NCBI GenBank assembly: GCA_002269645.1
Contig: NIVC01002094.1
Location: forward strand, 1 to 64,000
Source of the DNA: Macrostomum lignano
Lineage: Eukaryota
Direction of reading: 5' to 3'
DNA length: 64,000 nucleotides
The notes beneath the pieces are model-generated. The model was not told where the DNA came from. It worked only from the letters and a program-made list of their open reading frames with translations, and ran no database searches. Position 1 is the first letter of the stretch; every line of letters begins with the position of its first letter. This document shows, in pieces, positions 39,340 through 63,372 of the stretch. The translations under genes and the position numbers were made by a program.

Positions 39340-39355
39340 GGTGAGATAGGAGATT

Positions 39356-39419
<64 letters not shown>

Positions 39420-40875: not shown

Positions 40876-41156
40876 ATGAGCGAAACGGATGGTGCTAATG
40901 CAGGTGCTACTGCAAGTACAACCGCCGACTCGAAGATTTTAGAATCCGCAGCAGCAGACGGTAAATTGGAAATGGTACAGGGCATTTTCGAATATATCAA
41001 AGAAGATAAAAGCGCGATCGAGATGTGTCTGAGAGCAGCGGAACGCGCTGGCCACAGAGGTCATCGGGGAGTGATGAATTTTTTGGTGGAGAAAGCTCAA
41101 GAGCTACGTCAGACGGATCATAGAGAAACAAATCCGGCTGGCCGCACTCGCTCGAG
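40876..41156 (+). CDS. Exon 1: ATG plus one or two degenerate ankyrin-like repeats
   Basis: AAADGKLEMVQ and AERAGH...VMNFLVEK resemble ANK helices; the ORF stop lies inside the donor AG|GTGAGT (phase 2). Confidence 0.55.
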
Positions 41157-44100
41157 GTGAGTCACTGCTTGAATATGAGGTGTAGCTGAAAGCAAAAAAT
41201 AATTTAAACTGTGAGTTTATTTAATGAACTTGAAGTTGTGAATTCCTTTGTGGTGACTGTGGCAGCATGCAAAAAACTGTATACAATATTTAGCATTGGT
41301 TTAAATTATTTTATTTTAGCGAAAAATTTTTCATCCATAAAAATATCATGTTACTGAAGTGCTTGTGGTTGTCAGATCGTTGAACGGGCAGTCTCTGGCT
41401 CCGGCCGCTGCCAACAATGTTATACAGGCTGCTCTCTTGGGATGACTCGGTAGATCTCCTGAGCCCTTGGCGGTGCCTTCTAGAGGGATCCGTTTCTTAG
41501 AAATTGTTTCTCATAGCGTTGGTAGTAGCTGCCACCAGCTTGCACGGATCTTCACCTTCGATGAAGGAGATTCCGAGCTAAGCAAAATAAACGAGACGCA
41601 GAAACTCAGCACACCGTGCAGATTTGACAGCTCGTGATGGTGCACACCTTGTCAGCAGGTCCTGCTGGTCTCAAGTGCGGGGATTAGGTACTGTGCTGCT
41701 ATCTCGTTAGCTTAGTTGCTATTATTTGCACAAACTCAGGGCCGTATGCAGAAAGCTCTGTCTAGGGTAGTCTGGTCTTGAAAAGCTAGTCTGGACCACA
41801 GATAGAATAGAATCTGTGGTCTGGACTTGGATTTGGTATGCAGAAACACAAAGTTAGACCGGGACTACCAAGGAATTGGGTCTACTATAGGCAGATTATG
41901 GTAGCTAGACCATAGACTACAGACTGAACTACCCAAGTCCGGACTAGCTAGTCTGGACCACAGATACTAAATACCATAGATGGTTCACTCGACTATATTT
42001 ATCAAAACTACTCTCTGTTCGGTAGTATGATCGTAAAAGGCTATATTTATTTACTCAACTGCATGTAGCCGTGAATAATTAGGCTAATAAAACATAGATT
42101 ATTGAAGTTGTCTACACAATCGTAAGTCAAACTCTAATGCTACATTGCTACTGGTATACTTAGTAATTATTTTTATTCATTTAGCAAGCAAGCAACATTT
42201 TTGTGCATTGCGAGTGAGAAAAAAGAACAAAACGGGGAAATATTTATAATACAGTGAAATTATAATTACCGTAGAATAAAAGGATGCGACTATAAAGTTC
42301 TTAAGTTTTACTAGTAGCATCGAGTAACGTATTATTTTTGGAGACAAATTGAGATTTTAGAAAAATTCGCCATAAAAGACGTAACACAACTGCTCTGAGG
42401 CTCTATATTGGTATTTTAGGTTTAATACCTAAATACTCTGGTGCAAGAATTGTTAACTTCCCTTACATAGAAAAATTTAATATCTATTATCTTTTTCTTT
42501 GTAATATTTGAGTTAGTTTTCCTTAAGTAATATCATCGCTCGTACAATAAAAGTCGGAAACTTTGCTTATTGCCTCAACTTGCATTCCATCAGACCCGAA
42601 GGCCCCCCGCTCCTGGAGCGCTGGGACGCCGTTCGCCTCATCGGCCGCGGTGGCTTCGCCGAAGTCCACGAAGTTCGAACTGACACGGGCGTCACGTGTG
42701 CTGCCAAGACTCTCAGACTGCCTGTGCAGCTCGGTGATGAGCTGCCCTCTGTGAGCACAGAGATCCACAGAGCTATCGAGAGCGAGAGAAACCTGTGCGG
42801 ACTGCGGCATCCCAACATCGTCAGGTTCCTGCACATCGCTCAGCCGGAGCCCGCCACAGTCGTTGTGTTCATGGAGCTGCTGGACGGCCGAAGCTTGGAG
42901 AGGTTTATCGACAACAAGCCGCTGGACGAGCTGACTATTCGAGACTTCAGCGAGCAGGTGAGCATTGTGCATCCTTGATGCTCCTGTTCCATGTTCCCAT
43001 GAATGATGACTGCTCACTGACCGACCGCTCGCAGATCTGCCGCGCGCTGCTCTACCTGCACAGCCGGCAGCCGCCCGTGATCCACAGAGACATCAACTGC
43101 TCGAACATAATTGTTTGTGCTGACAACACGCGAATCAAGCTGATCGACTTCGGCCTGTCAATCAAGCTGGAGCACTCAGTCAGCCACATGTCAGCCTCCA
43201 CTCAGGCACCCAAAGGCACTCTGAACTTCATGGCGCCGGAGCTGCTCGGAGCGGGAGAGTCGGACAGCGTGCAGTACAGCAGAGAGTCGGACATCTGGGC
43301 GTTCGGCTGCTCGGTCTTCCAGATGGCCTCCGGCGCGAGGCCCTTCAAGGGCAACCAAAGCGTCCATCAGGTCGCCTCGAAAATTGCAAACAGTGGCGCC
43401 CCAGCCCTGCCGGACGGCCGGTCCGCAGAGCTGAGGGATTTCTACAGCCGCTGCACCGCCAAGGACCGCAGGAAGAGAAAATCAGCACAGGAGCTGCTGG
43501 GGCACGAGTTCCTGACACAATCTACACAATCGTAAGTCAAACTCTAATGCTACATTGCTACTGGTATACTTAGTAATTATTTTTATTCATTTAGCAAGCA
43601 AGCAACATTTTTGTGCATTGCGAGTGAGAAAAAAGAACAAAACGGGGAAATATTTATAATACAGTGAAATTATAATTACCGTAGAATAAAAGGATGCGAC
43701 AGTATTCGGGCCTCCATCGGTGAGTCTGACCGGTTCGGCTTTCATTGCTGCATTGCGCCTTCCAACAGGCTGACAGCTTGGGGCAGAAATTGCAGCGAAA
43801 CTCAGCAGGGTTGAGCTTGGGTTGACTCTCAGCTCTCCTGCTTGAGGTGCCAGTCTGAGTGCTGCAGCAGCTGCGCTCTCAGCTTTCCATCCAACTTTGG
43901 GCAAATCACCCAAACGCATCTCGGATCATTCCAGGCTCTCAGACGACTCTCAGCAAGACAGGCACCTGAGCGAGGAGCTCCATCAACTGCTTAGCAAGGC
44001 GGGATTCACCGGGCAGAGAGCAAAGTGTCAGCAGAGACTGGCTGACTGGCTTGAAGGAGTCGCTCGAGACCTCACACAGGATGACAGGCAGATGACGGGC

Positions 44101-47100
44101 AGCTTCGCAGAGGGCTGGGGCAACAGTCTGGTGCAAGTGAACGGCAGGACAGCTGTAGACTCGGACATTGACTGGACTGTGCTGGTTGCTGGGCAGCAGT
44201 TCCATCTGGAAGGTGGCTGCGAAGGATCTAAGGACTCCTGCAGAGACGCCACTCAGCTGCAAGTCACGGAGGGCCATGCACAGGTGGCAGTGAGAGCAGG
44301 TGAGTGAGGCTGGGTTCATCATCAGAATGACATATTCTGTGGAATGCGCTGAAATCCGTCTATTTCCTACTTCTTTTTTAAATTCCTATCATCAAGCTAG
44401 TAATAGTAGTGCAAACCAAAGGCTTAATAGTGAGAAATAGTTTGCGAATTTTTTCGCTCTATTGTTTTTTCATATTCAAGCGAAACAATAAAAACCCACA
44501 TCTTTATAGACAGTGTTTTTATTATTTATTTTAATTTGTTTCCTATTTAAATACTTTTTCTGTTTTTAGTTCGTGTTAGGTACTAGACACTCAAATATTC
44601 GCTGAGAAGCCGGTAATTTTATATCCAGTGCTTTTAACTGGCCCTTAAGCGACTCAGAAGTAAAATTTATCCTATATAATCAAGAGAATATCAGCAGTTT
44701 GAAACCCATTCATCCACTCTGCAGGCAGCCAACCGGTAGTGACAGCCACGGCGTGCGGTGTGCGGCCTGCACAGGACACGTGTCATGCGATCGAGTGCTG
44801 CAGCAGTTTCTGTGAGGACAGAATCATAAAAACGTTTCCATTCAGTGGTCCTGTTCACCTCGTTCGGGCGACCAGACCGAGCTCGACCAACGAGCTCAGA
44901 GTGAGCTTCAGCTTCCAAGAGAAAGACATCATGAGACAGCTGAGCACAGTTCAGGGCCAGCTGTTCACACTCATCAAGTTTATCTTCAAGAGACACTTGC
45001 CGCTCACTCTGGACACACCTGGACTCAAGACCTACCATGCAAAGACTCTGCTCTTTAGAATGCTAAAGAAGCATGGCACAAATCCTAAACTTGAGGCTTG
45101 GCAGCCCCACAATCTGATCGCTCTGCTCAAGGAGTCTCTCGACATGATGCTGAGCTTCATCGACTCGAGCAGCTCGCCCGATGAGTGCATGCCGCACTTC
45201 TTCATGCCAGACGCTCCGCTCTACTTCAAGAACGCTGGAATCGGCGGCGACTTCGACAACACGAAGGCGAGGGTTCGAGATCGACTTCTTGAGCTGAGAA
45301 GCGACATCGGCGGAGTGGCGGAGCAGCTGAGGAGACACGTGAGACCTCTGCAGTCAGAGAAGTTCTACTTTCACCCGTTCACTCTGCTGCCTCTGACAGC
45401 GCCGCCTGCTGTCACGGAGATCAGGAAACAAAGTGAATATCCAGAATTTTATTACAATTTCGCAGACGTGTACAGTGTAGTGCATCAGTGTGTGAGCGAG
45501 CTGCAGTCGGAATCGAGCAACAAAGACACCCTGATGAGGCAGCTCAGTCTCCTGCATAAGCTGCAGTGGTGCAAGTGCGCCGCCCTGTGCATGACCGCCA
45601 TGGCGCATTTGAAGTTCGGAGAACCTGAGAAGGCTGAGAGACTCGCGATGGAGCTGCAGAGACATCAGGTTGAGTCAGGGTTGAAGCCACAGGATATCCG
45701 AGACGAGAGTAAATGGCTACGAAATAAGATAAAACTGCCTGCAGACTCAGACTGGGCGTGGAGGTTCTGCCTCCCCTGCGACTCTCCGCCTCGCTTCCCA
45801 TTCCTTCCCGAGTTCACGCAGACTCTGTTCACAGCCAGACTGTCGCAGCCTCTCTCCTCCCACCTGTACGTGAACTTCCGCTGCCTGAGCTGGAGTCTCC
45901 AAGCTGAGCTGCTCCGCAATCGCGAACTTGAAATTAAACTGGAGGATTGGAAGCGAGAGCTGAAAGAAGACCCGGACTTGGAGGAGCTGCTCACTCTGGC
46001 TCACTACAGCGACTGCCGCGAGCACGTGGAGCTCAGCCTGCAGCAGATGGAGATGATCGAGAAAGAGAGACGCGTAGCCATGGAGACGCAGGACGAGGAG
46101 AACATCGGCTGGCTCAGGCAGAAGCTGGAGAGACTTAATGATGCAGAAGTTAGAGTAGCCAAAACACAAGCTGACGTCAATCTTCAACGAAACTCTGGCG
46201 AGTCACCTCTCTACATTGCATCTGAGCAGGAGATCCTGGAAGCCGTTATGTTCGAAAATGAAGCAAAAATTTCACGATACCTGCAGACGCCTTCTAACGT
46301 TGATAGGCTCCTCAGCATCAATGAGATTACTTTCTCACCGCTTCACTTTGCGTGTGAAATTGGAAAAGAAAAAATTGTCGAAATGTTCGCTCGAGCACAA
46401 GCTGACGTCAATCTTCAAGAAGTCCATGGCTGCTCACCTCTCTTCATTGCATCAGAGTGTGGTCACCACCAAGTTGTGAGCTCACTCATCAAAGCACAAG
46501 CTGACGTCAATCTTCAACGAAACGATGGCTGCTCACCTCTCTACATTGCATCAGGGTGTGGTCACCACCAAGTTGTGAGCTCACTCATCAAAGCACAAGC
46601 TGACGTCAATCTTCAACGAAACGATGGCTGCTCACCTCTCTACATTGCATCAGAGTGTGGTCACCACCAAGTCGTGAGCTCACTCATCAAAGCACAAGCT
46701 GACGTCAATCTTCAACGAAACGATGGCTGCTCACCTCTCTACATTGCATCAGGGTGTGGTCACCACCAAGTTGTGAGCTCACTCATCAAAGCACAAGCTG
46801 ACGTCAATCTTCAAGAAGTCGATGGCTGCTCACCTCTCTACATTGCATCAGGGAAGGGTCACCACCAAGTTGTGAGCTCACTCATCAAAGCACAAGCTGA
46901 CGTCAATCTTCAAGAAGTCGATGGCTGCTCACCTCTCTACATTGCATCAGGGAAGGGTCACCACCAAGTTGTGAGCTCACTCATCATAGCACAAGCTGAC
47001 GTCAATCTTCAAGAAGTCCATGGCTGCTCACCTCTCTTCATTGCATCAGAGTGTGGTCACCACCAAGTTGTGAGCTCACTCATCAAAGCACAAGCTGACG

Positions 47101-50100
47101 TCAATCTTCAACGAAACGATGGCTGCTCACCTCTCTACATTGCATCAGGGTGTGGTCACCACCAAGTTGTGAGCTCACTCATCAAAGCACAAGCTGACGT
47201 CAATCTTCAACGAAACGATGGCTGCTCACCTCTCTACATTGCATCAGAGTGTGGTCACCACCAAGTCGTGAGCTCACTCATCAAAGCACAAGCTGACGTC
47301 AATCTTCAAGAAGTCGATGGCTGCTCACCTCTCTTCATTGCGTCAGGGTGTGGTCACCACCAAGTCGTGAGCTCACTCATCAAAGCACAAGCTGACGTCA
47401 ATCTTCAACGAAACGATGGCTGCTCACCTCTCTACATTGCATCAGGGTGTGGTCACCACCAAGTTGTGAGCTCACTCATCAAAGCACAAGCTGACGTCAA
47501 TCTTCAAGAAGTCGATGGCTGCTCACCTCTCTACATTGCATCAGGGAAGGGTCACCACCAAGTTGTGAGCTCACTCATCAAAGCACAAGCTGACGTCAAT
47601 CTTCAACGAAACGATGGCTGCTCACCTCTCTACATTGCATCAGAGTGTGGTCACCACCAAGTTGTGAGCTCACTCATCAAAGCACAAGCTGACGTCAATC
47701 TTCAACGAAACGATGGCTGCTCACCTCTCTACATTGCATCAGGGTGTGGTCACCACCAAGTTGTGAGCTCACTCATCAAAGCACAAGCTGACGTCAATCT
47801 TCAACGAAACGATGGCTGCTCACCTCTCTACATTGCATCAGGGAAGGGTCACCACCAAGTTGTGAGCTCACTCATCAAAGCACAAGCTAACGTCAATCTT
47901 CAACGAAACGATGGCTGCTCACCTCTCTTCATTGCATCATGGAATGGTCACCACCAAGTTGTGAGCTCACTCATCAAGGCAAAAGCTGACGTCAATCTTC
48001 AACGAAACGATGGCTGCTCACCTCTCTACATTGCATCACAGAGGGGTCAACACCAAGTTGTGAGCACACTAATCAAAGCACAAGCTGATGCGATTGGTGT
48101 ACATATTGATAGTCAAGAATTGGCTAAAAGTACATTCGCTGTGAAAGAGCCACCAAAACTGTTAGATTTTGGGTAAGATTCATTTTTTATTTTTTGTTCT
48201 AAATAACTTTTTCGAGTAGTTTTTTACGGGTCCGATGAAGATAAGGTAATTGTCCAAGCAAGCGGTCGTGAGAGGCAGTATTGGCAGTTGGAACCGCATG
48301 CAAACAGTGGAAAGCGAGAGCTTGCTGAATTCTGAGTCAAGATGGATTTAACATGGCTGATATCACAGGCTAGTGTATCTGCTCACAGGGTTTATCCGTG
48401 ACTCAGAAGTAAATGCAATGTGAATGTGGAGTTCAGGGCCCCATCTGCCGTCATCCCCATAATTGGCATCGTCAGCAAATCAGGTTTCTTTTTTATTTAC
48501 TCGGACCGCTCAGATCCGTTCGGCCAATAAAGTTGCCTCGTAAACATGCCACTCTACAGACACTCTACCGGACAGTAACGAAAATTGGACCATTTTTCAG
48601 AAACAAACCATGCACATATCTTCTCTGGACACTGGGCTCACCCTATGGACTCACCACCGGCCTGACTCACCCCACCTCCAGCATTCCCCACCCCACCTCC
48701 TGCCTCCTTCACTCCACACACAGGTCTCTGAATCTAAAGTATCAAATCCTCATCACTGAATTAACTCTTTTCCCACCTGCCAACCATATCACAGACACTC
48801 TGCTTGGACACTGTATGGGCAGTCATGGAAATTGCACACATTTTCTGTAAACTAAACTAAACTAAACTAAAGAACTAATTAAAGGATCAACTGCCTGCAA
48901 AATGATCAGCAAAATCAATTCATGCACTGTTCGGGAGAGCTTCCCTGTGCTACACAAATCAGTCAATTAACCCATGTAGGCCTGCAAGTTTTTCACCTAT
49001 AACTCACATTTTAGATGCAGTCCCAGCGACTCAGAGCTGAGCCATCAGCTGCACTCAGCACTGGAGCAGTCAGGCTTCACCGAATCCCGAGCCGCATTGC
49101 AGAGCGCAGCTGCCGATGTCCTGCAGCAGATTCTAAGAAGTCGACTGAACTACGATAACTTTTTTGTCATTGGCAGCTACTCAGAAGGCTGGGGAAACAG
49201 CCTGACGACACTGGATGGCAGAACTGACTCCAATTCCGACATTGATGTGATGTGTTTGATTCCCGGTCGAGAATACCACCAGAGAGGCCTGTGCGAGTGC
49301 GATGGCGCTCCGGAGCAGCACGAGTTTGTGAACGGGCACATTCAGTGCTCAGGATTCGGTGAGCTCTCTCTTGGGAGTGAGATGGTGTTAGTTCTGTTAG
49401 TGATTTCTTCTGGTAGTGCAGGCATTCCCGTTTTGTGTCCCACCTGGGTAAAGTATTACTGGGAAACTCATGGCATTGTGCGTAGCTACGAGCTCGCATA
49501 AAATCGCTAAAAATATCTACGACCCAAACAAGAACCTGACTGTTTTCTTTCAGTCTGGATTGATTTGGTACATATGCATGAGCATTTAAAAATTTATTGA
49601 ACCTGCGGGGTTCTGTGATAGGTAGCTAGCTATACCCACAGAATGGTAGTCCCGTTTTGGAAACTTGCATTTATTATATGTACCTCAGTATTTTATATAC
49701 GCTTATAGTATAGGTAACAATATTCGACTTTTCTTCTTTCACAATTAGTCCAAAACATCACTGCACAGACTCAATGCTGTATATTGCCCAATCGGGAACC
49801 GAATCGTTTTTACAGCCTCCAACCCTGCTGATGCGACAGACGGATGCACACTGAGGCCAGCACTGGACAATGTCTCCGCATGCCGTCTCTGCCGCTACCC
49901 GCCCATCGCGCCGCTGCTACCAAACCGCGTCTCGAACATCCCTCATTCGGTGCTGGAGGCTCTCCGGAAGGTTCTCACCTCCGCCTCATCGCCCTGCCAC
50001 GTGGTGCACGCAGCCTCTCCTGACCGAGGGGGCGAAGAGCTCCGCGTGAGCACCAGCTTCCTGGAGAACCGGATGCTGCGAAGTCTCTCTACCCTGCAAG

Positions 50101-51269
50101 GCCAACTGTTCGTCACACTCAAATACCTGGTCAAGAAGGTCATTTGTCACAAGAATGGCTTCAATCAGCAAGGCTTGAAGTCCTACCACGTGAAGACCAT
50201 CACCTTCCGAATGGTGGACGAGACGCCGGTCGAGCAGTGGAAGACGGAGAACCTCGTGAGTCTCACGAGACAGACGCTGCAGATGCTGCTCGACTGTGTG
50301 GAGAAGAGCCGAGAGCAGGACAGACAAACACCTGACACACCTGACCGATCTCGGGGTCGCATCATGAAGCATTTCTTTCTCAGCGATGCGGCCATCTACC
50401 TCAAGGGTGCGGACAAGGAGAGAGCGGACCAGCATTTGGACGGCATCATGAGCACACTGAGAACAGTAATCGATCGGCTGCCTCAACTGCTGCAGCAGTT
50501 CATCGGCAGTCTCAGACCTGTGAGCGACTCAGGCACATTCTACTTCCATCCGTTCCTAATCCTGCCGGATCTGAGGCCGAAACCACTCACGAAGTCCAGT
50601 GCTCTCGAGTATTATCAGATCTACGACGTGGTGAGAGAGTGTCTGGTGCGTCTCTCGCACAGTGACTGCAGCCAGCGATCTCAGGAGTCGCTCACAGAGC
50701 TGATTTCCAGACTGCCAGACTGCGTCCTCTCAGCACGGGAGGCTCTCAGAGTGCTGGCTTGCCTGAAGTTCGGCTACCGAGGAACTGCAGAGAGAATCGT
50801 GAGCTTCTGCTCAGGTCACTCGGTGAGCAGAGGTATCGCTTGGTCTCGTGAGAAGTCGGCGACTGAAGCGACTGTGGAGTTCGTGATGCGGGATCTGAGC
50901 AGCCGCGACTCAGCGTGGAAGTTTTGCTTTAAGTTCGACCAGCGACCGAAACTCGAGTTCTTGTCAGGAGCTCTGAGGGAGTGCTTTCCCCTCCGGTTGT
51001 CAAGCATAGATGACCATTTCTACATGAACTTTGATGCTCTGCTGTGGGCTCTGCGGCTCGAGCTGCGGACTGATGGAGAAGCGCGCGCTCAGGACTGGAT
51101 CCGAGATGTGGCTAAGAGAGAGGACTCGGATGAGCAGGAGCTGCTGGTTGCCGCTTTTTATTCTTCGAATCCAGAGCAGCTTCAGGAAATGATGAATAAG
51201 CTGAAGATGATGGGAGCATATTCTCTTGATTGGCTGAAGGCGGGAATTCAGGAAAAATGGTGCTTTTAA
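40876..51269 (+). CDS. Predicted 7-exon gene (~2250 aa): ANK-like / Ser-Thr kinase / Mab-21-cGAS-like NTase / 17 ANK repeats / second Mab-21-cGAS-like NTase
   Basis: Exons 40876-41156, 42594-42957, 43035-43531, 43935-44299, 44725-48172, 49015-49358 and 49816-51269 have GT-AG introns with matching phases (2,0,2,1,2,1). They total 6753 nt, an open frame of 2250 aa plus stop. The join is inferred, not shown by transcripts. Confidence 0.65.
42111..42290 (+). repeat. 180-bp direct repeat, copy 1 (copy 2 at 43521-43700), flanking the kinase exons
   Basis: tctacacaatcgtaagtcaaactc...aggatgcgac matches at both sites, offset 1410 bp. Confidence 0.95.
42594..43531 (+). CDS. Protein kinase domain (STE11/MAP3K-like), exons 42594-42957 and 43035-43531
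   Basis: Motifs GRGGFAEV, CAAK, IESE (helix C), [20 protein letters not shown] and SDIWAFGC. The 77-nt intron is GTGAGC...CAG. The exon ends TC|GTAAGT (phase 2). Confidence 0.95.
43935..46140 (+). CDS. Mab-21/cGAS-like nucleotidyltransferase module 1 (exon 43935-44299 plus the 5' part of exon 44725-48172)
   Basis: GSFAEGWG...SDID metal-binding motif, third acid in RPAQD, then LRVSFSFQEK, GLKTYHAKTLLF and MPHFFMPD, which match the Mab-21 C-terminal helical motifs. Confidence 0.9.
46395..48077 (+). CDS. Array of 17 near-identical 99-bp (33-aa) ankyrin repeats within exon 5
   Basis: Consensus AQADVNLQ(RND/EVD/EVH)GCSPL(Y/F)IAS(GC/EC/GK)GHHQVVSSLIK; 17 x 99 = 1683 bp exactly. Confidence 0.97.
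49015..51269 (+). CDS. Mab-21/cGAS-like nucleotidyltransferase module 2 (exons 49015-49358 and 49816-51269)
   Basis: GSYSEGWG...SDID, RPALD, LRVSTSFLEN, GLKSYHVKTITF and MKHFFLSD. There is no in-frame ATG ahead of the motif. The phase-2 acceptor is TTTTAG|49015 (or CAG|49021). Confidence 0.9.
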
Positions 51270-52362
51270 ATGGCTACTTGGCAGTGAAGAGCTGCAGAAA
51301 ATGTTTATGCTCCAGATAAACAGTTCATTAAAATTTATTTGCAGACCTTTTGAATTAATTCTAATATATTTAAATTTCTAGCTTCGACCACGTTTTCCCG
51401 ACGAGATTCTCTCGCCAAATATTTTTATCTACAATTAGTTTTTGCTCTATAATGATCACAAATGCATTCTAATATTAGTTGCTCATCTTCTAAGGTATAT
51501 ACTAAAATGAAAATGTCTGTGTAAATAAGTATATTTCACGTTTACGCGCTTCCGTTTCGCAAATTTGTAAATTGCGGGCATTTTTAACTTAATGGGTATT
51601 TTACTCAGTCAAACTATTTTAATGGTATATTGTTTAGCTAGTATGTAACTTAACAAAGCTAGCCTAGCCCAGCACAGATACCATTATTCCACTTATTTCA
51701 CGGCAGTACAAAGATTAGGGGTGAATAGATTAATAAATGCGAAAAAAAACTTCATCCAGGAGCTGAATTCTTTATCTGGTCCTTGAAGTGAAAAAAGTTT
51801 ACCTTTCCCTGAAACATACTCGTACGATGGTCAATAGACAGAAGAAAATATTATCGTTGAAAAATGCCTGTGTAACTTCAATTTGTAAGTTACTCGGACA
51901 ATTGATGTGCCTTATACTAGATCTTTTAAGCTACATGTACAGGTAGCTTAGTAAATTGTTTAAATGCGCTTACAGTATGATAATGATGCAACTTCTAACG
52001 TTTCCGCTTTTGAATAGATCCACCTTCAGTTATCCTGTTTGCTTTGCATCGCAGGGTAAAGTCTGCAAATTTTACTTTAAAAAAAGTACATTTTTTGTCG
52101 TTTCTCTATAATTGTCAATTCTGTAACAATAAAGTGAGCCATTGTATTCTCTAACAGTTACTGATGGTACAGTGAATTTTATGTGCATCATTTGCTGCAA
52201 ATTTGATTTGTATAATTGCTATATTTTGGTGAACTACGAGTATGAAGAAATAGACAGTATGAATAAAAATTAACTATACTAAAAGCAACAAGTTCTGTAC
52301 ATGCTTTCTCTCTCTGTGTCTTGGTGTACCAAAGTCACGAGACGTGTTGTGTGTTGCGTGTT

Positions 52363-54043
52363 GTGTGTGATTGGGGAATCTGCAGATCGACGGCTTTGGT
52401 GTGTGATTGGGCAACCTGAAAGATGTGTGATTGGGGAATCTGAAGGCTGTTGTGTGTGATTGGGGAATCTGAAGGCTGTGGTGTGCGATTGAGGAATCTG
52501 AAAGCTGTTGTGTGTGATTGGGGAATCTGAAGGCTGTTGTGTGTGATTGGGGAATCTGAAGGCTGTTGTGTGTGATTTGGGAATCTGAAGGCTGTTGTGT
52601 GTGATTTGGGAATCTGAAGGCTGTTGTGTGTGATTTGGGAATCTGAAGGCTGTTGTGTGTGATTGGGGAATCTGAAGGCTGTTGTGTGTGATTTGGGAAT
52701 CTGAAGGCTGTTGTGTGTGATTGGGGAATCTGAAGGCTGTTGTGTGTGATTTGGGAATCTGAAGGCTGTTGTGTGTGATTTGGGAATCTGAAGGCTGTTG
52801 TGTGTGATTGGGGAATCTGAAGGATGTTGTGTGTGATTTGGGAATCTGAAGGCTGTTGTGTGTGATTGGGGAATCTGAAGGCTGTTGTGTGTGATTTGGG
52901 AATCTGAAGGCTGTGGTGTGTGATTTGGGAATCTGAAGGCTGTGGTGTGTGATTTGGGAATCTGAAGGCTGTTGTGTGTGATTGGGGAATCTGAAGGCTG
53001 TTGTGTGTGATTTGGGAATCTGAAGGCTGTGGTGTGTGATTTGGGAATCTGAAGGCTGTTGTGTGTGATTTGGGAATCTGAAGGCTGTGGTGTGTGATTT
53101 GGGAATCTGAAGGCTGTTGTGTGTGATTTGGGAATCTGAAGGCTGTGGTGTGTGATTTGGGAATCTGAAGGCTGTGGTGTGTGATTTGGGAATCTGAAGG
53201 CTGTTGTGTGTGATTTGGGAATCTGAAGGCTGTGGTGTGTGATTTGGGAATCTGAAGGCTGTTGTGTGTGATTTGGGAATCTGAAGGCTGTGGTGTGTGA
53301 TTTGGGAATCTGAAGGCTGTTGTGTGTGATTTGGGAATCTGAAGGCTGTTGTGTGTGATTTGGGAATCTGAAGGCTGTTGTGTGTGATTTGGGAATCTGA
53401 AGGCTGTGGTGTGTGATTTGGGAATCTGAAGGCTGTTGTGTGTGATTTGGGAATCTGAAGGCTGTGGTGTGTGATTTGGGAATCTGAAGGCTGTGGTGTG
53501 TGATTTGGGAATCTGAAGGCTGTGGTGTGTGATTTGGGAATCTGAAGGCTGTTGTGTGTGATTTGGGAATCTGAAGGCTGTGGTGTGTGATTTGGGAATC
53601 TGAAGGCTGTGGTGTGTGATTTGGGAATCTGAAGGCTGTTGTGTGTGATTTGGGAATCTGAAGGCTGTGGTGTGTGATTTGGGAATCTGAAGGCTGTGGT
53701 GTGTGATTTGGGAATCTGAAGGCTGTGGTGTGTGATTTGGGAATCTGAAGGCTGTTGTGTGTGATTTGGGAATCTGAAGGCTGTGGTGTGTGATTTGGGA
53801 ATCTGAAGGCTGTGGTGTGTGATTTGGGAATCTGAAGGCTGTTGTGTGTGATTTGGGAATCTGAAGGCTGTGGTGTGTGATTTGGGAATCTGAAGGCTGT
53901 GGTGTGTGATTTGGGAATCTGAAGGCTGTGGTGTGTGATTTGGGAATCTGAAGGCTGTTGTGTGTGATTTGGGAATCTGAAGGCTGTGGTGTGTGATTTG
54001 GGAATCTGAAGGCTGTGGTGTGTGATTGGGGAATCTGAAGGCT
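52363..54043. repeat. 29-bp minisatellite (tgtgtgatttgggaatctgaaggctgt[t/g]g), ~58 copies
   Basis: Homogeneous tandem units with no spacers; the 638-aa minus-strand ORF is a 3 x 29-bp artefact. Confidence 0.97.
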
Positions 54044-55160
54044 CTTATTTGTGTGGCGTACATGTATAATGCTGAAAATTCAAATAAATGGTTATTATTA
54101 CTTTGTACATTCATCTCAACCCAGTTGTTTTGCAGCACAAAAACATACGAGCGTACTATGGAAGGTTGGCTTACTTGGTTATAATAATCCCGCAATCAGG
54201 ACGTTTGTTTAAAGTTGTTTTTGTTTAAACTAGAGATCTATTCAGCAAGCACAAAAGGACGAACAAATGGACCGAACAGCCAACGAGTAGCTATAGTTGG
54301 TGTCAATGCTTTATAACGTGCCAAGAGCCAAGAGAAAATATTTTAAAATCGGATTACAGCTAAGGAAACTGCTAATGCATCCCAATTTCTTTATTTGAAC
54401 AATTTTCTTCTTAATTTAATTCTGAGAATGTAGGACAAAGTATTCAATTTATAAACGATAGAGTAACGATTAGAATAAAAACTAGGGTAGCTACTCACCC
54501 CTGAGGAGCAAAGGTTAAAATTTCACTGAGCCACTGAGTACAAAGACCACGTGATCAAATAGGAATATAAGATAGCAAACGCAAGGAAGGACGAAGGCAC
54601 AACCTCACTACTCTCCCAGAGAAAAACACGGGGAGAAAACAACGGGATAAAAGATGAAGCTTTCGACAACGCAGAGAATGCAGCGCCTGCCTTACTTGGT
54701 AACTGGCAGGAGGACACTTGATGTCACAGGAGGGCCTTTGCAGCACCAGCTCAGCCCAAGCTCACTTAAGGATCCCAATCCTTAATAATAATAAGGAAGG
54801 TGCAGTTGGAGATCCTTGCCCTGAAGATACATGACCTGCAGACATTGCTGGGAATAACAACAGTCGTTGATGTTGATGTTTAAAAAGTCATCCGGAATTA
54901 TATTTGAACTGAATGCTTCAATCATATTTAAATAAGTAGGCACCGTTAGGTAGGGCTTTGGCCTTGAATGGACTAAATAGTTTCACTCGTCCAATAAAGC
55001 GATTTATGACTTTTTTCATTTAAAGGAATTACCAAAGGCTAAAATATTTTTCCCCAGGAATCGGTTGCACCAGCGACCTTTTCCCCCAGGCAGTCAACAA
55101 GCAATCGCAGTTAAATCTTCATTTCCATCGATCGCATTGAGGGTTGGAATTGTGTCATTA

Positions 55161-56500
55161 CCACTAGGCACCACTAGGCTTGAAGACCATCGAGGCATCT
55201 GCCTTCAGTCCTGTGCAGCGAAACTGTTCAACCGGATGCTGCTTCCGCGGTTGCAGCCCGTGCTGGATCCGTACCTGCGCCCAGAGCAGAACGGGTTCCG
55301 GCCCCATCGCGGCACAGTGGCACAGATCCTGGCTCTTCGCCGAGTCATCGAGGAGGCGCGGATTCGCCAGTCGATCCTGATTCTAATCTTTATTGATTTC
55401 AAGAAGGCATTCGACTCGGTTGTCAGAGCCGTGCTTCCAATGGTGCTCCGCGCGTACAACGTGCCTGAGCAGCTGATCTCCGCCATCATGGCGATGTACC
55501 GTGATACGACAGCTGCTGTGACAACACCGGACGGCCTATCGGACTCCTTTGAGACATCCTCCGGAGTGCTTCAGGGAGATACGCTGGCGCCGTTCCTGTT
55601 CGTCCTGGTGCTTGACTGGTTGCTGCGGACTGCTCTTCCTACCGACGACGACGGCTTTCTGCTGCGGCGACGCGTGGGTCGACGTCAACCGGAGAAGCGG
55701 CTCAGCGTGCTTGGCTACGCCGACGACCTCGCCTGCTATCCTCGACCGTCGATGGCGCCCAACGGCAGCTGGACAGGCTAGTTGCCGTTGCGGCGAGCGT
55801 CGGCCTGGTGGTCAACACGCAGAAGGCCGTTGTGCTCTGCGTGCCGGACGACATCGAGGCTGCAATCTTCTGCCGAGGCGCTGACGGGCAGGCGACCGCG
55901 ATGTCAGCAGTTCGTCTACCTCGACGGTCTGGTTCCAGACGCTCGCGAGGACCTGCGACGCCGCCGCGGGCTTGCCTGGGCTGCCTTTCGTTCTGTGAGG
56001 GCGGTCCTGCAGTCCGAGGCCCGACCGGACCGCCAGAGGGCGGCGCTGTTCCAGGCGGTAATCGAGACCGTCCTGCTCTACAACGCCGAGACCTGGACGC
56101 TGACGGACTCACTCGAACTGCAAGTCGATGCGGCGCACGCTGGCCTGCTGCGCGCCGCCTTCAACATCGGCGTCGAGCGAGTCAACAACGCGGCACTCTA
56201 TCGCCGCGCTGGCCTGCCACGTCCAAGCGATCTGCTGCGAGTCGGCGACTCCAGCTCGCAGGCCATCTCATCCACGCCGAGTCGTACTGCCCACAGCCGG
56301 TGCAGGAGGTGCTGCTGCTCACGCTGCAGGCACCCTACCGGCGAGGTCAAGCGCGAACTCGGCGTTACGTCGACTGTCTGCTGGCTGACGCCGGCGCCCC
56401 GGACACTGCCGGTGGCGCGGCCTTTGTTCGCGCCCAAGCCATGAAGCGCGCCCTGTGACGCTGACTTTTGCCACCCTGACAGCGTATTTTGTTGTTGTTG
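55161..56500 (+). mobile_element. 5'-truncated RTE-type non-LTR retrotransposon, frameshifted RT
   Basis: RT motifs EQNGFRPHRG, FIDFKKAFDSV, GVLQGDTLAPFLF and YADDL. It ends in a (GTT)n tail at ~56490-56500. An 11-bp TSD TTGTGTCATTA lies at 55150-55160 and 56501-56511. Confidence 0.93.
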
Positions 56501-57297
56501 TTGTGTCATTAATTAGCACTTATTATCAAGAGTAATAAAGCTGTGTATTTTTCATTTATTTTGAGCTGACGTCGGCGCCAAAATGATTTTTTCAATTTGA
56601 GTAAAGTATAAAAAGCGCTGTGCTCTAAGCAAGCCTCGTATTTATAGGTTAAAATTTGATTGACCAGTTCAGTGTCAAAAGGTTTGGGGTTATAGGTTTA
56701 GGGTCGGGTCGGGTTTTGGTACCGGGTTGAAAGTTCGGGGTTTGAAAAAATGTTTGGGTCGGGGTTCGGAGTACGTTTACCGGGTTCGAGGTGGGTTTAC
56801 CGGGGTTTGGGGTAGGTTTACCGGGCTAGGGGTAGGTTTTCCGGGATATGTTTTGTCCAAAAAACTGTCGTCCTTAACATCCCTAATACGAGAGACTGAA
56901 ATAAATTTCTTTTCTCAGTGAAGTTTTTGGGAGACAGGATTTGCTGAGTGATTTGGACAATTGAGTTTGCTTTATTTTATTAAATATGAATTAGGAAGTG
57001 TCCTGGACCAAGCCAGGCCAGCAGAGCCTTCGAATGCAGCCCCGTTGTGCATGCAGTGAGCTGAAGTCAGCTGCAAGGCCTCCCCACCGCCTCTGAGAGA
57101 GGCATTCCTTGCTGAAAGCCAGAGCTGCCTGGTTGCCATGGCGACCGCAGCTGCTGCATAATTCAGACTCGGAGCTTTTATATTGGCTCGCATCTGGGCT
57201 TGTACTGGGTGACTGCGGACTGACTTGTGAAATTCCTGAGACCACGGCAGAGTCAGCTGAACTGGTGAGTCTGTTGAGCACGGGAATGAGCTGGGAT

Positions 57298-57565
57298 TCC
57301 GCCCTCTACATCCGCCCTCTGCATCCGCCCTCTACATCCGCCCTCTACATCCGCCCTCTACATCCGCCCTCTACATCCGCCCTCTACATCCGCCCTCTAC
57401 ATCCGCCCTCTACATCCGCCCTCTACATCCGCCCTCTACATCCGCCCTCTACATCCGCCCTCTACATCCACCTTCTACATCCGCCCTCTACATCCGCCCT
57501 CTACATCCGCCCTCTACATCCACCTTCTACATCCGCCCTCTACATCCGCCCTCTACATCCGCCCT
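57298..57565. repeat. 13-bp minisatellite (ctacatccgccct), ~20 copies
   Basis: Directly visible. Confidence 0.95.
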
Positions 57566-57589
57566 CTGTCTCCGCCATCTTCCGGCGCC

Positions 57590-58095
57590 AAACCCGACAT
57601 TCCACACTCAGAGCAAATGCAGCTCCAACCCGACATTCCACACTCAGACCAAATGCAGCTCCAACCCGACATTCCACACTCAGACCAAATGCAGCTCCAA
57701 CCCGACATTCCACACTCAGACCAAATGCAGCTCCAACCCGACATTCCACACTCAGACCAAATGCAGCTCCAACCCGACATTCCACACTCAGACCAAATGC
57801 AGCTCCAACCCGACATTCCACACTCAGACCAAATGCAGCTCCAACCCGACATTCCACACTCAGACCAAATGGAGCTCCAACCCGACATTCCACACTCAGA
57901 CCAAATGCAGCTCCAACCCGACATTCCACACTCAGACCAAATGCAGCTCCAACCCGACATTCCACACTCAGACCAAATGCAGCTCCAACCCGACATTCCA
58001 CACTCAGACCAAATGCAGCTCCAACCCGACATTCCACACTCAGACCAAATGCAGCTCCAACCCGACATTCCACACTCAGACCAAATGAAGCTCCA
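57590..58095 (+). repeat. 36-bp minisatellite, ~14 copies, overlapping the start codon of the fibrinogen-domain gene
   Basis: Unit cccgacattccacactcagaccaaATGcagctccaa; an in-frame ATG occurs every 36 bp from 57617 to 58085. Confidence 0.95.
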
Positions 58096-59121
58096 AGTCG
58101 CTCGTCAAGTCGCTCTGCTGCTGCTGCTGGCTGCAGTGCTGCATCACGATCACGTGACCGAAGCCGCCGCCGACTCCGGGCAGATGTGGCAGTCGAGCCG
58201 CGAGAGCCTCTCCGACTACGAGGCCGTGAGGTCGCTGTCAGCCCGAGGCGAAGTTGAATGCGCGGTGCGTGCCAGCAGCGACTCCCCTGTGCACCTGATG
58301 TCGTTCAGCGCCAGATCCAGCCTGTGCGCTCACTTCAGGTGCCGCCTGGGCCTGAGCCACTGCAGCAAGTGCCGCAATGCGAACAAGGGAGCTCAGCGGG
58401 TGCGGGTGAGTCACTCAGTTGGACATGTCAGCGTTAACGCAGAGTAGAAGAGCTGGTGCACCTGTGCACCTGTCACCTTGCAGACAGCCGGCAGTGACTG
58501 CTGGACCACCGTGCAGCACAGGCTGTCCGGCTCAGTGGACTTTTACCGCAACTGGACTCAGTACCAGAGCGAGTTCGGCGAGGGACCCGACGGAAACTAC
58601 TGGATCGGTGAGTGCATCCCGGATGTGCTGCATGCGCTTGCTTTTCCAGTTCGGATTTCAATGACAAGCAACGCCATGACGCCTGCATCTTCCCAGGACT
58701 GAACTCTCTCCACGCTCTCACTGCTTCTGCTCCTCGGAAGCTGAGGATCCTGATGAAGGCGTGGAACGACTCTGAGCACTGGGCCGAGTACTCCAGCTTC
58801 TCCGTGGGTCCCGAGTCCGACAACTACCGGCTGAGCGTCTCCGGCTTCTCCGGCAGCGCCGGCATCGGCGACAGCCTCACCCACAGCAGCGGCATGCAGT
58901 TCAGCACGAAGGACGCCGATCACGACACCGATCCTACTGACAACTGCGCAATCCGTTTTAAAGGTGCCTGGTGGTTCAAAGACTGTTTCCACACCCACCC
59001 GAACGGAGAGTACAAAAACTCATCTGCTGCCATCGGAGGTGCTTTAAATAAGGGAGTTATTTAGCATGGCAACTTTGGCGCTTACTACTCGCTGAAGGAG
59101 ATCGAGATGCTGCTTCTGTAG
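58085..59121 (+). CDS. Secreted fibrinogen-related (FReD) protein with signal peptide and a Cys-containing N-terminal domain; in-frame TAG at 59062-59064
   Basis: Exons 58085-58405, 58484-58607 and 58697-59121 (phases 0,1). [19 protein letters not shown] is signal-like. FReD motifs: [40 protein letters not shown] and YSLKEIEM. Confidence 0.9.
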
Positions 59122-59639
59122 CAGCACCAGCGTGATGGCAGAGAAGCTGCCGCTGCTGCAACCGCGAATTCGAGCGTTCGAAGCAACTTTTTGACATTTC
59201 CTGACATTTGCGCAAACTGAAATATTTTGCTGCAGTGCGAGGACAGCCGCGAGATGAAGCGGTCGATGCTGATAATGAAAATACACAAGCTCAGAATGTC
59301 CACCTTGAGAAAAATTAAAATTTCCGGATTAAAAATCAAATTCTACATTTTTTAAATTTCTTCAAATAAATTTCACCCGATGTTGAGTCTCGCCATGGAG
59401 AGCTTAAGTACAAGGACTATATACTCTGAGATCCCGACCAGTTTCTCTGCAACATGCTGCTTTAATATTATTATTATTATGGTGAGATACATTGAGGCTG
59501 AGAATAGATTATGGTGAGATGCGATGAAGCTGAGAATAGATTGTGGTGGAATAAGCTGCCCATGATTTTATAAAGTGGAACATGTTTATTCTGATTGACT
59601 GAACTGATTTGTTTAAGCGCATTTCAATTTTCTGTTCTA

Positions 59640-60355
59640 GAGAGAGGGAGGGGAGGTGGGAGTGAGGGAGGGAAAGAATGGGGAAGAAGATGGAGAGAGG
59701 GAGGGAAAGAATGGGGAAGAAGATGGAGAGAGGGAGGGAAAGAATGGGGAAGAAGATGGAGAGAGGGAGGGAAAGAATGGGGAAGAAGATGGAGAGAGGG
59801 AGGGAAAGAATGGGGAAGATGGGAGAGAGGGAGGGAAAGAATGGGGAAGATGGGAGAGAGGGAGGGAAAGAATGGGGAAGATGGAGAGAGGGAGGGAAAG
59901 AATGGGGAAGATGGAGAGAGGGAGGGAAAGAATGGGGAAGATGGAGAGAGGGAAGGAAAGAATGGGGAAGATGGAGAGAGGGAAGGAAAGAATGGGGAAG
60001 ATGGAGAGAGGGAGGGAAAGAATGGGGAAGATGGAGAGAGGGAGGGAAAGAATGGGGAAGAAGATGGAGAGAGGGAGGGAAAGAATGGGGAAGAAGATGG
60101 AGAGAGGGAGGGAAAGAATGGGGAAGAAGATGGAGAGAGGGAGGGAAAGAATGGGGAAGAAGATGGAGAGAGGGAGGGAAAGAATGGGGAAGAAGATGGA
60201 GAGAGGGAGGGAAAGAATGGGGAAGAAGATGGAGAGAGGGAGGGAAAGAATGGGGAAGAAGATGGAGAGAGGGAGGGAAAGAATGGGGAAGAAGATGGAG
60301 AGAGAGAGAGGGAAAGAATGGGGAAGAAGATGGAGAGAGGGAGGGAAAGAATAGG
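59640..60355. repeat. Purine-rich 33/30-bp minisatellite (ggagagagggagggaaagaatggggaag[aag]at)
   Basis: Blocks of 33-bp and 30-bp units; the overlapping ORFs are artefacts. Confidence 0.95.
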
Positions 60356-60360
60356 GAAAA

Positions 60361-60569
60361 AATCGCGCATTTTGAGCAGTTTTTTTGCACTTTTAGGTAG
60401 GAAGACTTGAGTTTAGGAAATTTTAAGGTAGCCTATGACACTTTCCGTAGTGAATTTAGGGCGGGTGCAAAATTTGGTGTAATTTGGTCGAGCGGTTTGG
60501 GAGTCTATAGCGAAGTAATTTGTACACAGACACACAGACACACAGAGTTTTGATTTTTATAGGTATAGA
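60361..60569 (-). mobile_element. Dispersed Helitron-like family, copy 3 (5' part)
   Basis: Reverse complement reads A|TCTATACCTATAAAAATCAAAACTCTGTGTGTC... and is colinear with the 29558 and 36614 copies. Confidence 0.6.
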
Positions 60570-61644
60570 TTTATTTTCTGCCAAGTTGCTTTTCAGAATC
60601 AGTTGTATCAGGAATTCTTTCAGAACAATTGCTAAAATATTTACCCATACTTTTCATGGCTTACAGTTCGCCTTCTTTCAATCGCAATGCCAAAGTGGTG
60701 ACAAATCACTGACCGTGCATTATTGAATTTCAGTTCCATTGCCCGGAATACCCTAATGCTTGACGAATTGCAACTATATTAGTGAATCTGATAAGTCCCC
60801 AATTACAATTTGATGGTGGGGAATGATTCCCAGTTTTCAGCAGCTTTGCCAGGACGGCAGTGGCGCAACCAAGATTTTCAACACCGCATGGATCCCTGTC
60901 GCTGCGTGCCGGAGAAACTGCCGTCACTCTTGATGCACTGCCACTGGCTGATTAGTTTAGTAGGGCGGTACAATTAGGACATGCATTGAACATATTTTAT
61001 ATTGATTTTCTCTTAGTGTATTTTTTTACATTTCTGCTATCAGTAGAGCGTCAAATAAAAGTTTTTGTTTTTTTGTTGTACTTGTGTATTTTAATTGATT
61101 AAACTGTCAGCCTGTTAGATACGCCGGTCCAGCCAAAATCGTATAAATATGAACACTCTGGAGCGGTCAACAGCTCAATTACTTCTCCACTTAGCAAGTA
61201 CTCAATATTCACGTCTTGTACGCCAGGGCTTGTCCTTGATTGTACTAAAACTTCACTTGCTTGTTGTACATCGGTCGTGTGACTTGATTGTTCATTTGAT
61301 GACAGTGTGAATCGGATTAATTTTAGTAAATTACGAGCGTACTGCTCCTGCATCTCTCACCCCGCTGAGCAGAGCAGCTGCCGGGCCCACTGGCACCCAA
61401 CCAGGCCTCAGACACAGCCGCTGGGTCAGAGAAGAGAATCGGCCTCAGTCCATTTAAACAAATGTCTCTGCACAGGGAGAGCTCAGAGATTTCAGTCCGT
61501 GACAGCGGGACTTTTGCTGCTGCTGCTGAGCTGGCAGGCGAATTCGCTTGAAGAAGAGCAAAGCACTCAGTTTAAAGTCGTGTGGAACAGCTGCGGCAGA
61601 CAGCAGATCGGCAGAGAAGCGCTGCTAGGAGAAGCTGTGTAGCC

Positions 61645-62787
61645 ATGGCAACACAGATGGAGCGGAAGCTGAGAGCGGCGCTGGAGGCTGGAGACAGCGA
61701 GGAGCTGCAGCGACTGTGCGGTGAGGTCGGCAGCAACATCGAGCTGGAGGTGGGCGGGTTCGACACGCAAGACTTTCCCTTAGAAGAGCTTCGCATGCCG
61801 CTGGCCCATCACGTGGCCTGCAAGCCGGTGAGCTCGTCGTGCCTGGAGCTGCTGATTAACAGATTCGGACTCGACTGTCTGACACATGGAAATGATAGGG
61901 GCGAGACTCCAGTGGACTTGGCTGCCCAGCATCAGGACGAATCTTGGATGGAGCTGGTTAAAGAAAAGGGAGGCAGAGGCTGCTTGAGAATTGTCGATGG
62001 ATGGAGACAGTCAGTCGCTCACTTTGCCGCTATGAACAGAAAAAGCAACTCTTGTCTAAGGTGGCTGGTGAAGGAGCTCGGCAGCGACTGTCTCACAGCT
62101 CCTGACAAACTCGGTGACATGGCCGTCCATTTTGCCGCTAAGCATCAGGGCATCGAGTCACTGGAGTGGATCAAGAGACAGATCGGAACTGACTACTTTC
62201 GGCAGAAGGGGGGGGTTCTGGAAGAGAACAGCATTTCACTTTGCTGCTCAGAAGTCTGACAATTCAAATCTGAAGTGGCTGGTGAGGGAGCTCGGCAGCG
62301 ACTGTCTCACAGTTCCTGACAAACACGGTGACACGGCCGTCCATTTGGCCGCTCAGCATCAGGGCACCGAGTCGCTGGAGTGGATCAAGAATCAGATCGG
62401 AACTGACTGCTTTCGGCAGAAGGAAAAGCGGAAAAGAACAGCATTTCACTTTGCTGCTGAGAAGTCTGACAATTCAAATCTGAAGTGGCTGGTGAAGGAG
62501 CTCGGCAGCGACTGTCTCACAGTTCCTGACAAATACGGAAACATGGCCGTCCATTTAGCCGCTCAACATCAACCAGTCGACTCTCTTCAGTTCATTTTTG
62601 ACCAAATTGCAGCCGAAATGTTCAGCTTGAAGAACAACAGGGGCGAAACACCGACTGATGTTGTTGAGAGTAATCGGTGCCGCACAGACCAGTCAGCAAA
62701 GCGGGCCTGGATTTCCTCCACGCAGCCGCAGCTCGAAGCCTCTAGGCCTCCCGCTGGCAGCTCAGCGCCGACTGCCGCCTCAGCTGG
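61645..62787 (+). CDS. Ankyrin-repeat exon (~8 long, alternating repeats) of a second ANK-kinase gene; +1 frameshift in the G8 run at 62208-62215
   Basis: Motifs GETPVDLAA, AHFAA, AVHFAA, AFHFAA and AVHLAA. Removing one G joins the two ORFs. The exon ends GG|GTGAGT (phase 2). Confidence 0.85.
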
Positions 62788-63372
62788 GTGAGTCCTGACT
62801 GAGAACTGCTGCCTCAGCTGGGTGAGTCCTGACTGAGAGCTGCTGCCTGACACTTAAAATACTGAAAATATTGTTTGGCGAAAATTCATTGCACCTTGAT
62901 GATCGGCGCCCTGAAATTCTCAGCAGCGCCGCAGTCAAGCGAAGGCGTCATGAATCTGTCACTGCAGCTCCTCATGGGACCCCGAACCCCCACCCAAAGC
63001 TCAATCTGCAGGAATTTTTTAGCACAAAGCATCAGCGAGTTTAAGTGCCATCAAACTCTCCGATTTTAGTAGAAATGTACTTAATGTGACGTTCCAAATA
63101 TTGTCACTTAAATGACTTCAGAGCCTCCAATCTCTTCGTGGGACCGCAATCTCCCGATTGCGTCTCTAATGTCCATATAGCGCCACCCAAAGCTCAATCT
63201 GCAGTGCAGCTTCTTATTTACCACAGGGTGTGTACATGTACAAGATTTACTTCGACAAGCCTCTTGTACTGGCGTGAGTTCATTCAGCTCACACTGCTAA
63301 AGCACACAGCTACAGCACACACAGCTAGAGCATGCAAATCATCCCTAATTGCCTCAATTCGCATCCCATCAG

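Follow-up and report, generated by a model that had tools for sequence, protein, structure and literature searches.

Exon-phase symmetry is a signature of exon shuffling (PMC3632108). In the model of Gilbert and Patthy, best known from the class 1-1 modules of extracellular proteins in metazoans, the introns on the two sides of a module share a single phase, one and the same module turns up in different domain contexts at unchanged intron borders, recombination breaks in introns or close to them, and tandem duplication of a module preserves the reading frame. All of these traits recur in a gene family of Macrostomum lignano, two members of which lie on the forward strand of the stretch studied here, the first 64,000 nucleotides (nt) of contig NIVC01002094.1 (assembly GCA_002269645.1; hereafter the window). 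Gene 1 (40876-51269) strings together a leading exon, here called exon A, a protein kinase, two Mab-21 modules and an ankyrin-repeat (ANK) array, while gene 2 starts at 61645 and runs off the end of the window. We find that the gene 1 locus is probably a product of classical exon shuffling and module duplication, recently rearranged. Unlike the described cases, its modules belong to class 2-2 rather than 1-1, consist of intracellular signalling rather than extracellular domains, and span several exons, the introns inside them having other phases. The events are also recent, with chimeric introns, an exact 180-nt repeat and a fossil exon end still readable.

Other described systems offer partial parallels. 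Dscam1-type arrays of cassette or mutually exclusive exons are likewise made of symmetric units that can be skipped without a shift of frame (a property predicted here from the DNA), but the M. lignano units are different whole domains and not variants of one exon; nor did docking or selector elements come to light, although no search was aimed at them. Tandem-kinase proteins, of which the plant tandem kinase proteins are an example, resemble the family in carrying two or three complete kinase domains in a row through unit duplication (period 1306 nt at paralogous locus L003, offset 1410 nt in the window). The M. lignano units belong to a different lineage and carry their own flanking phase-2 introns, which points to duplication at the level of the DNA unit. 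The third parallel is with cGAS-like receptors (cGLRs) and Mab-21 proteins, shared features being Mab-21_C matches at threshold, the model fold of the M. lignano protein P0121 and the motif GS...DSDID. The M. lignano proteins differ in having about 200 extra C-terminal residues and in being fused to ankyrin arrays and, in P0001 and possibly in gene 1, to a kinase; they also have no sequence-level match to solved structures.

The best database matches of every module of the locus are M. lignano proteins (75-97% identity), which marks the DNA as nuclear DNA of a flatworm, and all close matches are proteins of this species that carry Pkinase, Mab-21_C and Ank domains in differing orders. They form a large, M. 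lignano-specific family of ankyrin, STE-like kinase and cGAS-like (Mab-21) modules, a description of which was not found in a literature search for M. lignano and Mab-21. Its repertoire appears to comprise several ankyrin or helical-repeat N-termini, a two-exon STE-like Ser/Thr kinase, a two-exon Mab-21 fold and linker mini-exons of 42 or 54 nt.

Gene 1 begins with exon A (40876-41156), an open reading frame of 94 codons from an ATG start to a phase-2 donor, 94% identical to the first exon of P0026 and ending at the same RTRSR| junction. The kinase follows in two exons, 42594-42957 (phase-2 acceptor, phase-0 donor, with the same exon structure in all paralogs) and 43035-43531 (phase-2 donor). 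The first Mab-21 module (Mab21-1) enters through an exon at 43935-44299 (phase-2 acceptor, phase-1 donor) that carries GSFAEGWGNS...DSDID and is homologous to an internal exon in P0001, P0003 and P0006. The rest of Mab21-1 and the ANK array share a single exon, 44725-48172, with a 1145-residue open frame, Pfam matches to Mab-21_C and Ank, and a phase-2 donor; the array itself (46295-48178) consists of 17 units of 99 nt, each encoding 33 residues, or one ankyrin repeat, at 92-100% identity. A phase-2 intron (48173-49014) leads to the second Mab-21 module (Mab21-2), encoded at 49015-49358 (phase-2 acceptor, with an in-frame alternative six nt on at 49021; phase-1 donor) and 49816-51269, the latter 89% identical to P0121 and closed by a true stop codon (TTT TAA). 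The predicted models of P0122, P0126 and P0128 contain a homologous junction, that of P0122 matching the window's (…KEPEFE|CSLSDSEL), and 48652-49014 is common to the window and locus L006. Joined, these exons give 6,753 nt with one stop, at the very end, and hence exon A, kinase, Mab21-1 with its ANK array and Mab21-2 lie in one open frame of 2,250 codons.

The first-pass annotation had claimed that every protein module between 41150 and 62791 is bounded by phase-2 introns whose donors contain an in-frame stop, and the splice sites themselves bear it out. Reading and recomputation place the donors at 41156 (AG|GTGAGT), 43531 (TC|GTAAGT), 48172 (GG|GTAAGA) and 62787 (GG|GTGAGT) all in phase 2, with read-through giving TGA, TAA, TAA and TGA, respectively; the acceptors at 42594, 43935, 49015/49021 and 63373 are also phase 2, one base of each completing the split codon. 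The wording was nevertheless too broad, since all eight sites are phase 2 but Mab21-1 and the 17-unit array lie within one exon (44725-48172). Nor are the four boundaries one set, as the pair 62787/63373 belongs to gene 2, an ANK-kinase gene, and its intron is not an independent observation because the gene 2 kinase exon copies 42566-43221 at 97.6% identity; homology also links the acceptors at 43935 and 49015, which occupy equivalent positions in two Mab-21 paralogs. Introns inside the modules of gene 1 have other phases: phase 0 in the kinase (42957/43035) and phase 1 in the two Mab-21s (44299/44725 and 49358/49816). The further claim that any module can join a downstream one in frame is correct for gene 1, where exon A-kinase-Mab21-2, exon A-Mab21-1/ANK-Mab21-2 and exon A-Mab21-2 are all open. 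The kinase module (364 + 497 = 861 nt, divisible by three), the Mab21-1/ANK block (365 + 3448 = 3813 nt) and the linker exons (54 and 42 nt) are all class 2-2, and for the kinase and linkers this symmetry means that tandem duplication, or relocation with breakpoints in the flanking introns, keeps the frame.

Intron phase at the module boundaries was also compared among paralogs. Twelve paralogous loci were taken from the NIVC01 assembly (all counts refer to the window plus these, 13 loci), and annotated proteins were mapped codon by codon onto their own DNA with GT/GC-AG introns, which yielded 51 introns including those of the window: 25 in phase 2, 18 in phase 0 and 8 in phase 1. For P0128 on locus L008 the model and the DNA disagree in the ANK repeats, so a peptide search was used to locate the two junctions of interest. 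Phase 2 is found in 22 of 22 introns bordering a kinase, a Mab-21 module or a linker mini-exon, compared with 0 of the 21 intradomain kinase and Mab-21 introns, these positions being partly homologous among the loci. The kinase-internal introns are uniformly phase 0 (13/13), always at ...SEQ|ICxAL, and the Mab-21-internal ones uniformly phase 1 (8/8). Four or more classes of acceptor, and four or more module 3' ends, have phase 2 in common, and the pattern appears to exceed chance once paralogs are counted. In human genes phase 2 is the rarest intron class, at 21% (PMC3632108).

The in-frame stop fared differently. T[GA]A occupies donor positions +2 to +4 at 23/25 phase-2, 16/18 phase-0 and 8/8 phase-1 introns, and two kinase-to-kinase phase-2 donors (GTACAT and GTACAA) lack it. 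Its presence after a phase-2 donor is trivial, because it is the GT[AG]A of the GTRAGT consensus read in that frame. We therefore rejected the donor stop as a signal, T[GA]A being found at 47/51 donors whatever the phase, as the caveat attached to the first-pass annotation had anticipated. It is not a meaningful feature, and the locus as a whole reveals no new splicing code and is not evidence for a regulated isoform code.

Across the family, the same borders are met by different partners. The kinase acceptor is preceded by exon A (window, P0026), an N2-type ANK exon (gene 2, P0035), the 42-nt linker (P0018, P0037) or another kinase (P0026, P0018, P0048), and the Mab-21 acceptor by the 54-nt 2-2 linker (P0001, P0003, P0006) or an ANK array (P0126, P0128, P0122). 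The resulting architectures include ANK-kinase, exon A-kinase-kinase (P0026), ANK-kinase-kinase(-kinase) (P0018, P0002), N-repeat-linker-Mab21 (P0003, P0005, P0006), ANK array-Mab21 type 2 (P0126, P0128, P0122) and N-Mab21-kinase (P0001), and some paralog models also contain Pfam caspase or Ras domains. Three kinase units stand in tandem at L003; of a three-unit array, one unit is missing from the annotated model P0018 but present in the UniProt model P0002. In P0001 (L004 8165-9927) Mab-21 is fused to kinase exon 1 within one exon, nearly at the usual kinase acceptor point; the kinase-internal phase-0 intron is retained, indicating a DNA-level fusion of exons and not a retrocopy.

The introns on either side of the gene 1 kinase record how it came to its present position. 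From 34481 to 42120 the window is collinear with L002, the P0026 locus, at about 98% identity, a segment that takes in exon A together with the adjoining 964 nt of its intron. Within that intron, 41157-42120 is 99.3% identical to L002 10282-11242; the homology ends at 42120, and no resumed collinearity with L002 was found within the remaining 22 kb of the window. A three-way alignment places junction J1 at 42111-42120, where a 10-nt microhomology, TCTACACAAT, is shared by the exon A intron and the 3' end of a kinase exon. The same point begins a 180-nt exact repeat, 42111-42290, which is 100% identical to 43521-43700 at an offset of 1410 nt. The downstream copy is the end of kinase exon 2 with the first 169 nt of the next intron, while the upstream copy is a fossil: the last 11 nt of a kinase exon, a GTAAGT donor and 169 nt of intron. 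Read from 42111, the order is thus 11 nt of kinase-exon end and the donor, then 472 nt of intron leading into both kinase exons, and lastly the same 11 nt with 169 nt of intron. The A-to-kinase intron (41157-42593) would accordingly combine 964 nt from an exon A gene with 473 nt of what was apparently a kinase-to-kinase intron. The kinase tail at 43505-43531, …ACACAATCT ACACAATCG, contains a 9-nt tandem duplication (TQS TQS), and it is this sequence that supplies the microhomology at J1.

On the other side of the kinase, junction J2 (43700-43720, with the break at 43700/43701) adjoins the fossil 3' end of a 54-nt linker exon. Its donor, CCATCG|GTGAGTCT, is intact (43714-43721, with the GT at 43720), some 17 nt of the linker exon are retained, and 43709-43934 is 87% identical to L005 8325-8565, that is, to a linker-exon end and a linker-to-Mab21 intron. 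The kinase-to-Mab21 intron thus begins with 169 nt of kinase 3' intron, runs through the truncated linker exon and ends as the linker-to-Mab21 intron, J2 falling just inside the linker exon and not strictly in an intron. The Mab-21 part of gene 1 lacks its own N-terminal exons and most of the linker exon. What an un-rearranged partner gene may look like is suggested by the P0010 model, which reads N-Mab21-start of ANK-Mab21 type 2 and is 97% identical in the type-2 part. Both kinase-flanking introns are thus chimeras of introns from different genes, as would be expected if exons are shuffled by recombination inside introns or close to them.

Two side observations concern exon A and its intron. 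Exon A (40876-41154) differs from L002 10001-10279 by six nonsynonymous and no synonymous changes, a small number, but odd beside a flanking intron that is nearly identical (the counterpart locus as a whole being 98-99% identical). Within the intron, 41739-41958 holds a short element with many inverted GTCTGGACCACAGAT-like repeats and a 75% identical copy at L002 28102-28273; it is probably a non-autonomous transposon of small size.

The make-up of the mosaic can be read from these junctions. An exon A gene like L002/P0026 (exon A-kinase-kinase) is joined at 42111-42120, through the 10-nt microhomology, to a piece of 1,590 nt (42111-43700) whose two ends repeat the same 180 nt, 1410 nt apart, and which would correspond to 1.13 units of a tandem-kinase array. 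This piece, in turn, is joined at 43700/43701 to a Mab21-ANK-Mab21 gene short of its N-terminal exons and most of its linker exon, the rearrangement having probably proceeded by microhomology-mediated template switching or end joining. All borders being phase 2, the mosaic is open from the exon A ATG to the Mab21-2 stop, and if the three junction introns are used it would encode an A-kinase-Mab21-ANK-Mab21 protein of 2,250 residues. No new mechanism is called for; this is another instance of textbook exon shuffling. The plug-in exon shuffling proposed in the first-pass annotation is in this respect upheld by the phase-2 border rule, the varied partners and the chimeric introns, though not for the whole family, some fusions being intronless.

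The domains themselves are recognizable. The two joined kinase exons match Pkinase with E=6e-50 over 263/263 profile positions and keep the Gly loop, the AxK Lys, HRD, DFG and APE, with Asn in place of the catalytic-loop Lys; the nearest solved structures by sequence are the kinase domains of ASK1/MAP3K5 and WNK1. The module may be classified on these grounds as a eukaryotic STE-like Ser/Thr protein kinase. Mab-21_C scores are 23.8 bits for Mab21-1 and 26.1 bits for Mab21-2, around a curated cut-off of 24.1, and GS…DSDID stands at the expected N-terminal position in both. A sequence search with Mab21-1 against solved structures in the PDB gave no meaningful match. The AlphaFold model of P0121 (pLDDT 85, pTM 0.88) matches cGAS, the cGLR MB21D2 or MAB21L1 in all of its top 50 PDB matches (probability 1.0, target TM 0.46-0.58), and the Mab-21 modules are accordingly predicted to adopt the bilobed cGAS/Mab-21 nucleotidyltransferase fold.

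The alternative that survives best is that no fusion exists, the stops at 43533 and 48174 ending separate genes (exon A-kinase, Mab21-ANK and Mab21-2) or the downstream parts being 5'-truncated pseudogenes; we consider this unlikely. Equally doubtful is its variant, a tandem or operon-like cluster that is resolved by spliced-leader trans-splicing or otherwise used as separate units. In M. lignano 30% of genes are trans-spliced and 15% lie in operons, operons being defined by a distance of 1 kb (PMC8629364), and the spacings here, 403 and 842 nt, fall inside that distance. The Mab-21 unit is also visibly stripped of its own upstream exons. Against separate units, the homologous acceptors are internal and cis-spliced in every mapped paralog, the annotations of P0122, P0126 and P0128 have ANK spliced to Mab21-2, and the frames of 1,271 and 599 codons are intact. 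The recurrence of the kinase 3' flank upstream, followed by the kinase acceptor, further suggests that TC|GTAAGT was a working kinase-to-kinase donor in the source array.

Translation starts bear on the same alternative. Neither Mab-21 has an in-frame ATG before its catalytic GS...DxD, and in every module, the kinase included, 53-93 residues precede the first in-frame Met. In M. lignano the last three bases of the spliced leader are ATG (PMC8629364), but at these phase-2 acceptors that ATG would be out of frame and would meet a stop after 20-48 codons. With the first Met internal and the leader ATG out of frame, the modules need an upstream phase-2 exon, and autonomous expression from the spliced leader or from a module's own ATG was rejected on the same grounds. 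An out-of-frame ATG lies exactly on the acceptor at 49015 (49015-49017); the UniProt model P0125 takes it as its start and opens with the wrong-frame peptide MQSQRLRAE…, a case of gene predictors mis-starting modules that lack their 5' exons.

Several points weigh against a recently shuffled, continuous gene. The kinase is C-terminal in most paralogs, where HEFL is followed by a genuine stop no more than about 10 residues on, so TCG TAA may be the kinase's own stop, and the order kinase-then-Mab-21 was not found in any database protein; both points equally favour separate units. Intronless fusions occur in the family (Mab21-kinase in P0001, K1-K2 in P0056, and also P0048), and the 22/22 count overstates the independent evidence, because many positions are homologous by descent and annotation keeps genes that are in frame. 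A mosaic confined to a single haplotype or subgenome, or one that is non-functional, is also conceivable. On the other side, every module has kept its reading frame, and the ratio of nonsynonymous to synonymous substitution rates between window modules and paralogs (0.2-0.8) is like that of paralog pairs (0.6-0.77), a range that does not discriminate a live from a decaying gene. To an assembly error at J1 or J2 we assign very little probability.

A second alternative would see in gene 1 a regulated splicing grammar, in which one gene yields many isoforms through module skipping and retained introns give cleanly truncated proteins. Every skipped combination is indeed an open reading frame. Moreover, in P0010 Mab21 type 2 follows immediately on the start of the ANK region, and gene 1 has a possible alternative phase-2 donor, AT|GTTCGA (46249-46250), which when joined to 49015 would skip the ANK array and recreate the P0010 junction EAV-I-CSPSDSEL, known from that predicted model only. 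P0018 and P0002 are likewise discordant over one kinase unit. These three, however, are predicted gene models, and the pair 62787/63373 lies in another gene. The frequency of T[GA]A at phase-0 and phase-1 donors, as high as at phase 2, and its absence from the two kinase-to-kinase donors argue that the stop is not selected. A stop in a retained intron, when further junctions lie downstream of it, usually triggers nonsense-mediated decay rather than giving a stable truncated protein, which also speaks against such a grammar. We judge it distinctly improbable.

Finally, J1, J2 and the 180-nt repeat might be an assembly chimera and the shared phase mere common descent with no role in shuffling, as might be argued from a window that differs from all annotated proteins (85-97% identity at best), from a homopolymer frame change in gene 2 that suggests some consensus errors, and from a repeat-rich, hidden polyploid genome whose published assembly has posed challenges (PMC10468722). 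This is highly improbable, since it needs two misjoins 1.6 kb apart at non-repetitive points (one sharing only 10 nt) that preserve splice sites and frame, and since 12 loci, each assembled independently, show varied partners at the same borders, which requires real rearrangements somewhere in the family.

Gene 2 comprises an ANK exon (61645-62787, with the phase-2 donor and the same junction as in the paralog P0035 at L001), kinase exon 1 (63373-63736; phase-2 acceptor, phase-0 donor), which is 97.6% identical to the gene 1 kinase, and kinase exon 2 (63814-64000), cut by the window end. P0035 was considered as the window's own protein and rejected, the DNA of L001 being only 84-95% identical, which makes it a paralog or homeolog. 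The ANK exon has a frame change in a run of eight G at 62208-62215 (…KGG|VLEENSISL* versus …GGFWKRTAFHF in the paralog). Either the consensus is wrong at this homopolymer, or the frameshift is real and would make gene 2 a pseudogene. At 62773-62840 a 34-nt tandem duplication (35/37 matches) of the ANK-exon end and its GTGAGT donor creates a second donor near 62822; L001 appears to be single-copy for this segment, as overlapping BLAST matches fall on one L001 stretch.

The first 40 kb of the window are CT-rich, low-complexity repeat in which no clear genes were seen; in 1-14000 many segments resemble one another at 67-93% identity with strong C-over-G and T-over-A skew, forming a large complex satellite or segmental-repeat block in which no convincing coding content was seen. 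Between the two genes lie a reverse-transcriptase fragment at 55065-55781 (RVT_1, E=3e-21), a stand-alone Fibrinogen_C open frame at 58612-59064 (E=2e-28) and further tandem-repeat blocks at 57109-58257 and 59509-60410. A 29-nt satellite fills 52279-54195 with about 56 copies and recurs at 90% identity in L004 1-950, roughly 5 kb upstream of the P0001 gene; it may mark or promote rearrangement in these clusters.

Our findings place in view an undescribed flatworm family, as judged from the literature search on M. lignano and Mab-21, that combines cGAS-like folds, ankyrin arrays and kinases. Phase-compatible shuffling is usually inferred statistically from old events, mostly in 1-1 extracellular modules; here, 2-2 intracellular signalling modules can be traced across a young, expanding family, one event being preserved with its breakpoints, microhomology and fossil exon ends. 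For a difficult polyploid genome this supplies an annotation rule, namely that the kinase and Mab-21 modules of the family must follow a phase-2 donor. A bolder proposition, that A-kinase-cGLR-ANK-cGLR is an expressed, functional sensor gene and that 2-2 plug-in modules are actively building sensors of an innate-immune type, seems to us improbable. If it were true, a cGAS-like sensor would be coupled directly to a MAP3K-like kinase, the kinase piece would be a copy of slightly more than one array unit, arising for example via circular DNA or a template-switch intermediate, and phase-2 introns would serve as a reusable connector for very fast evolution of domain architecture.

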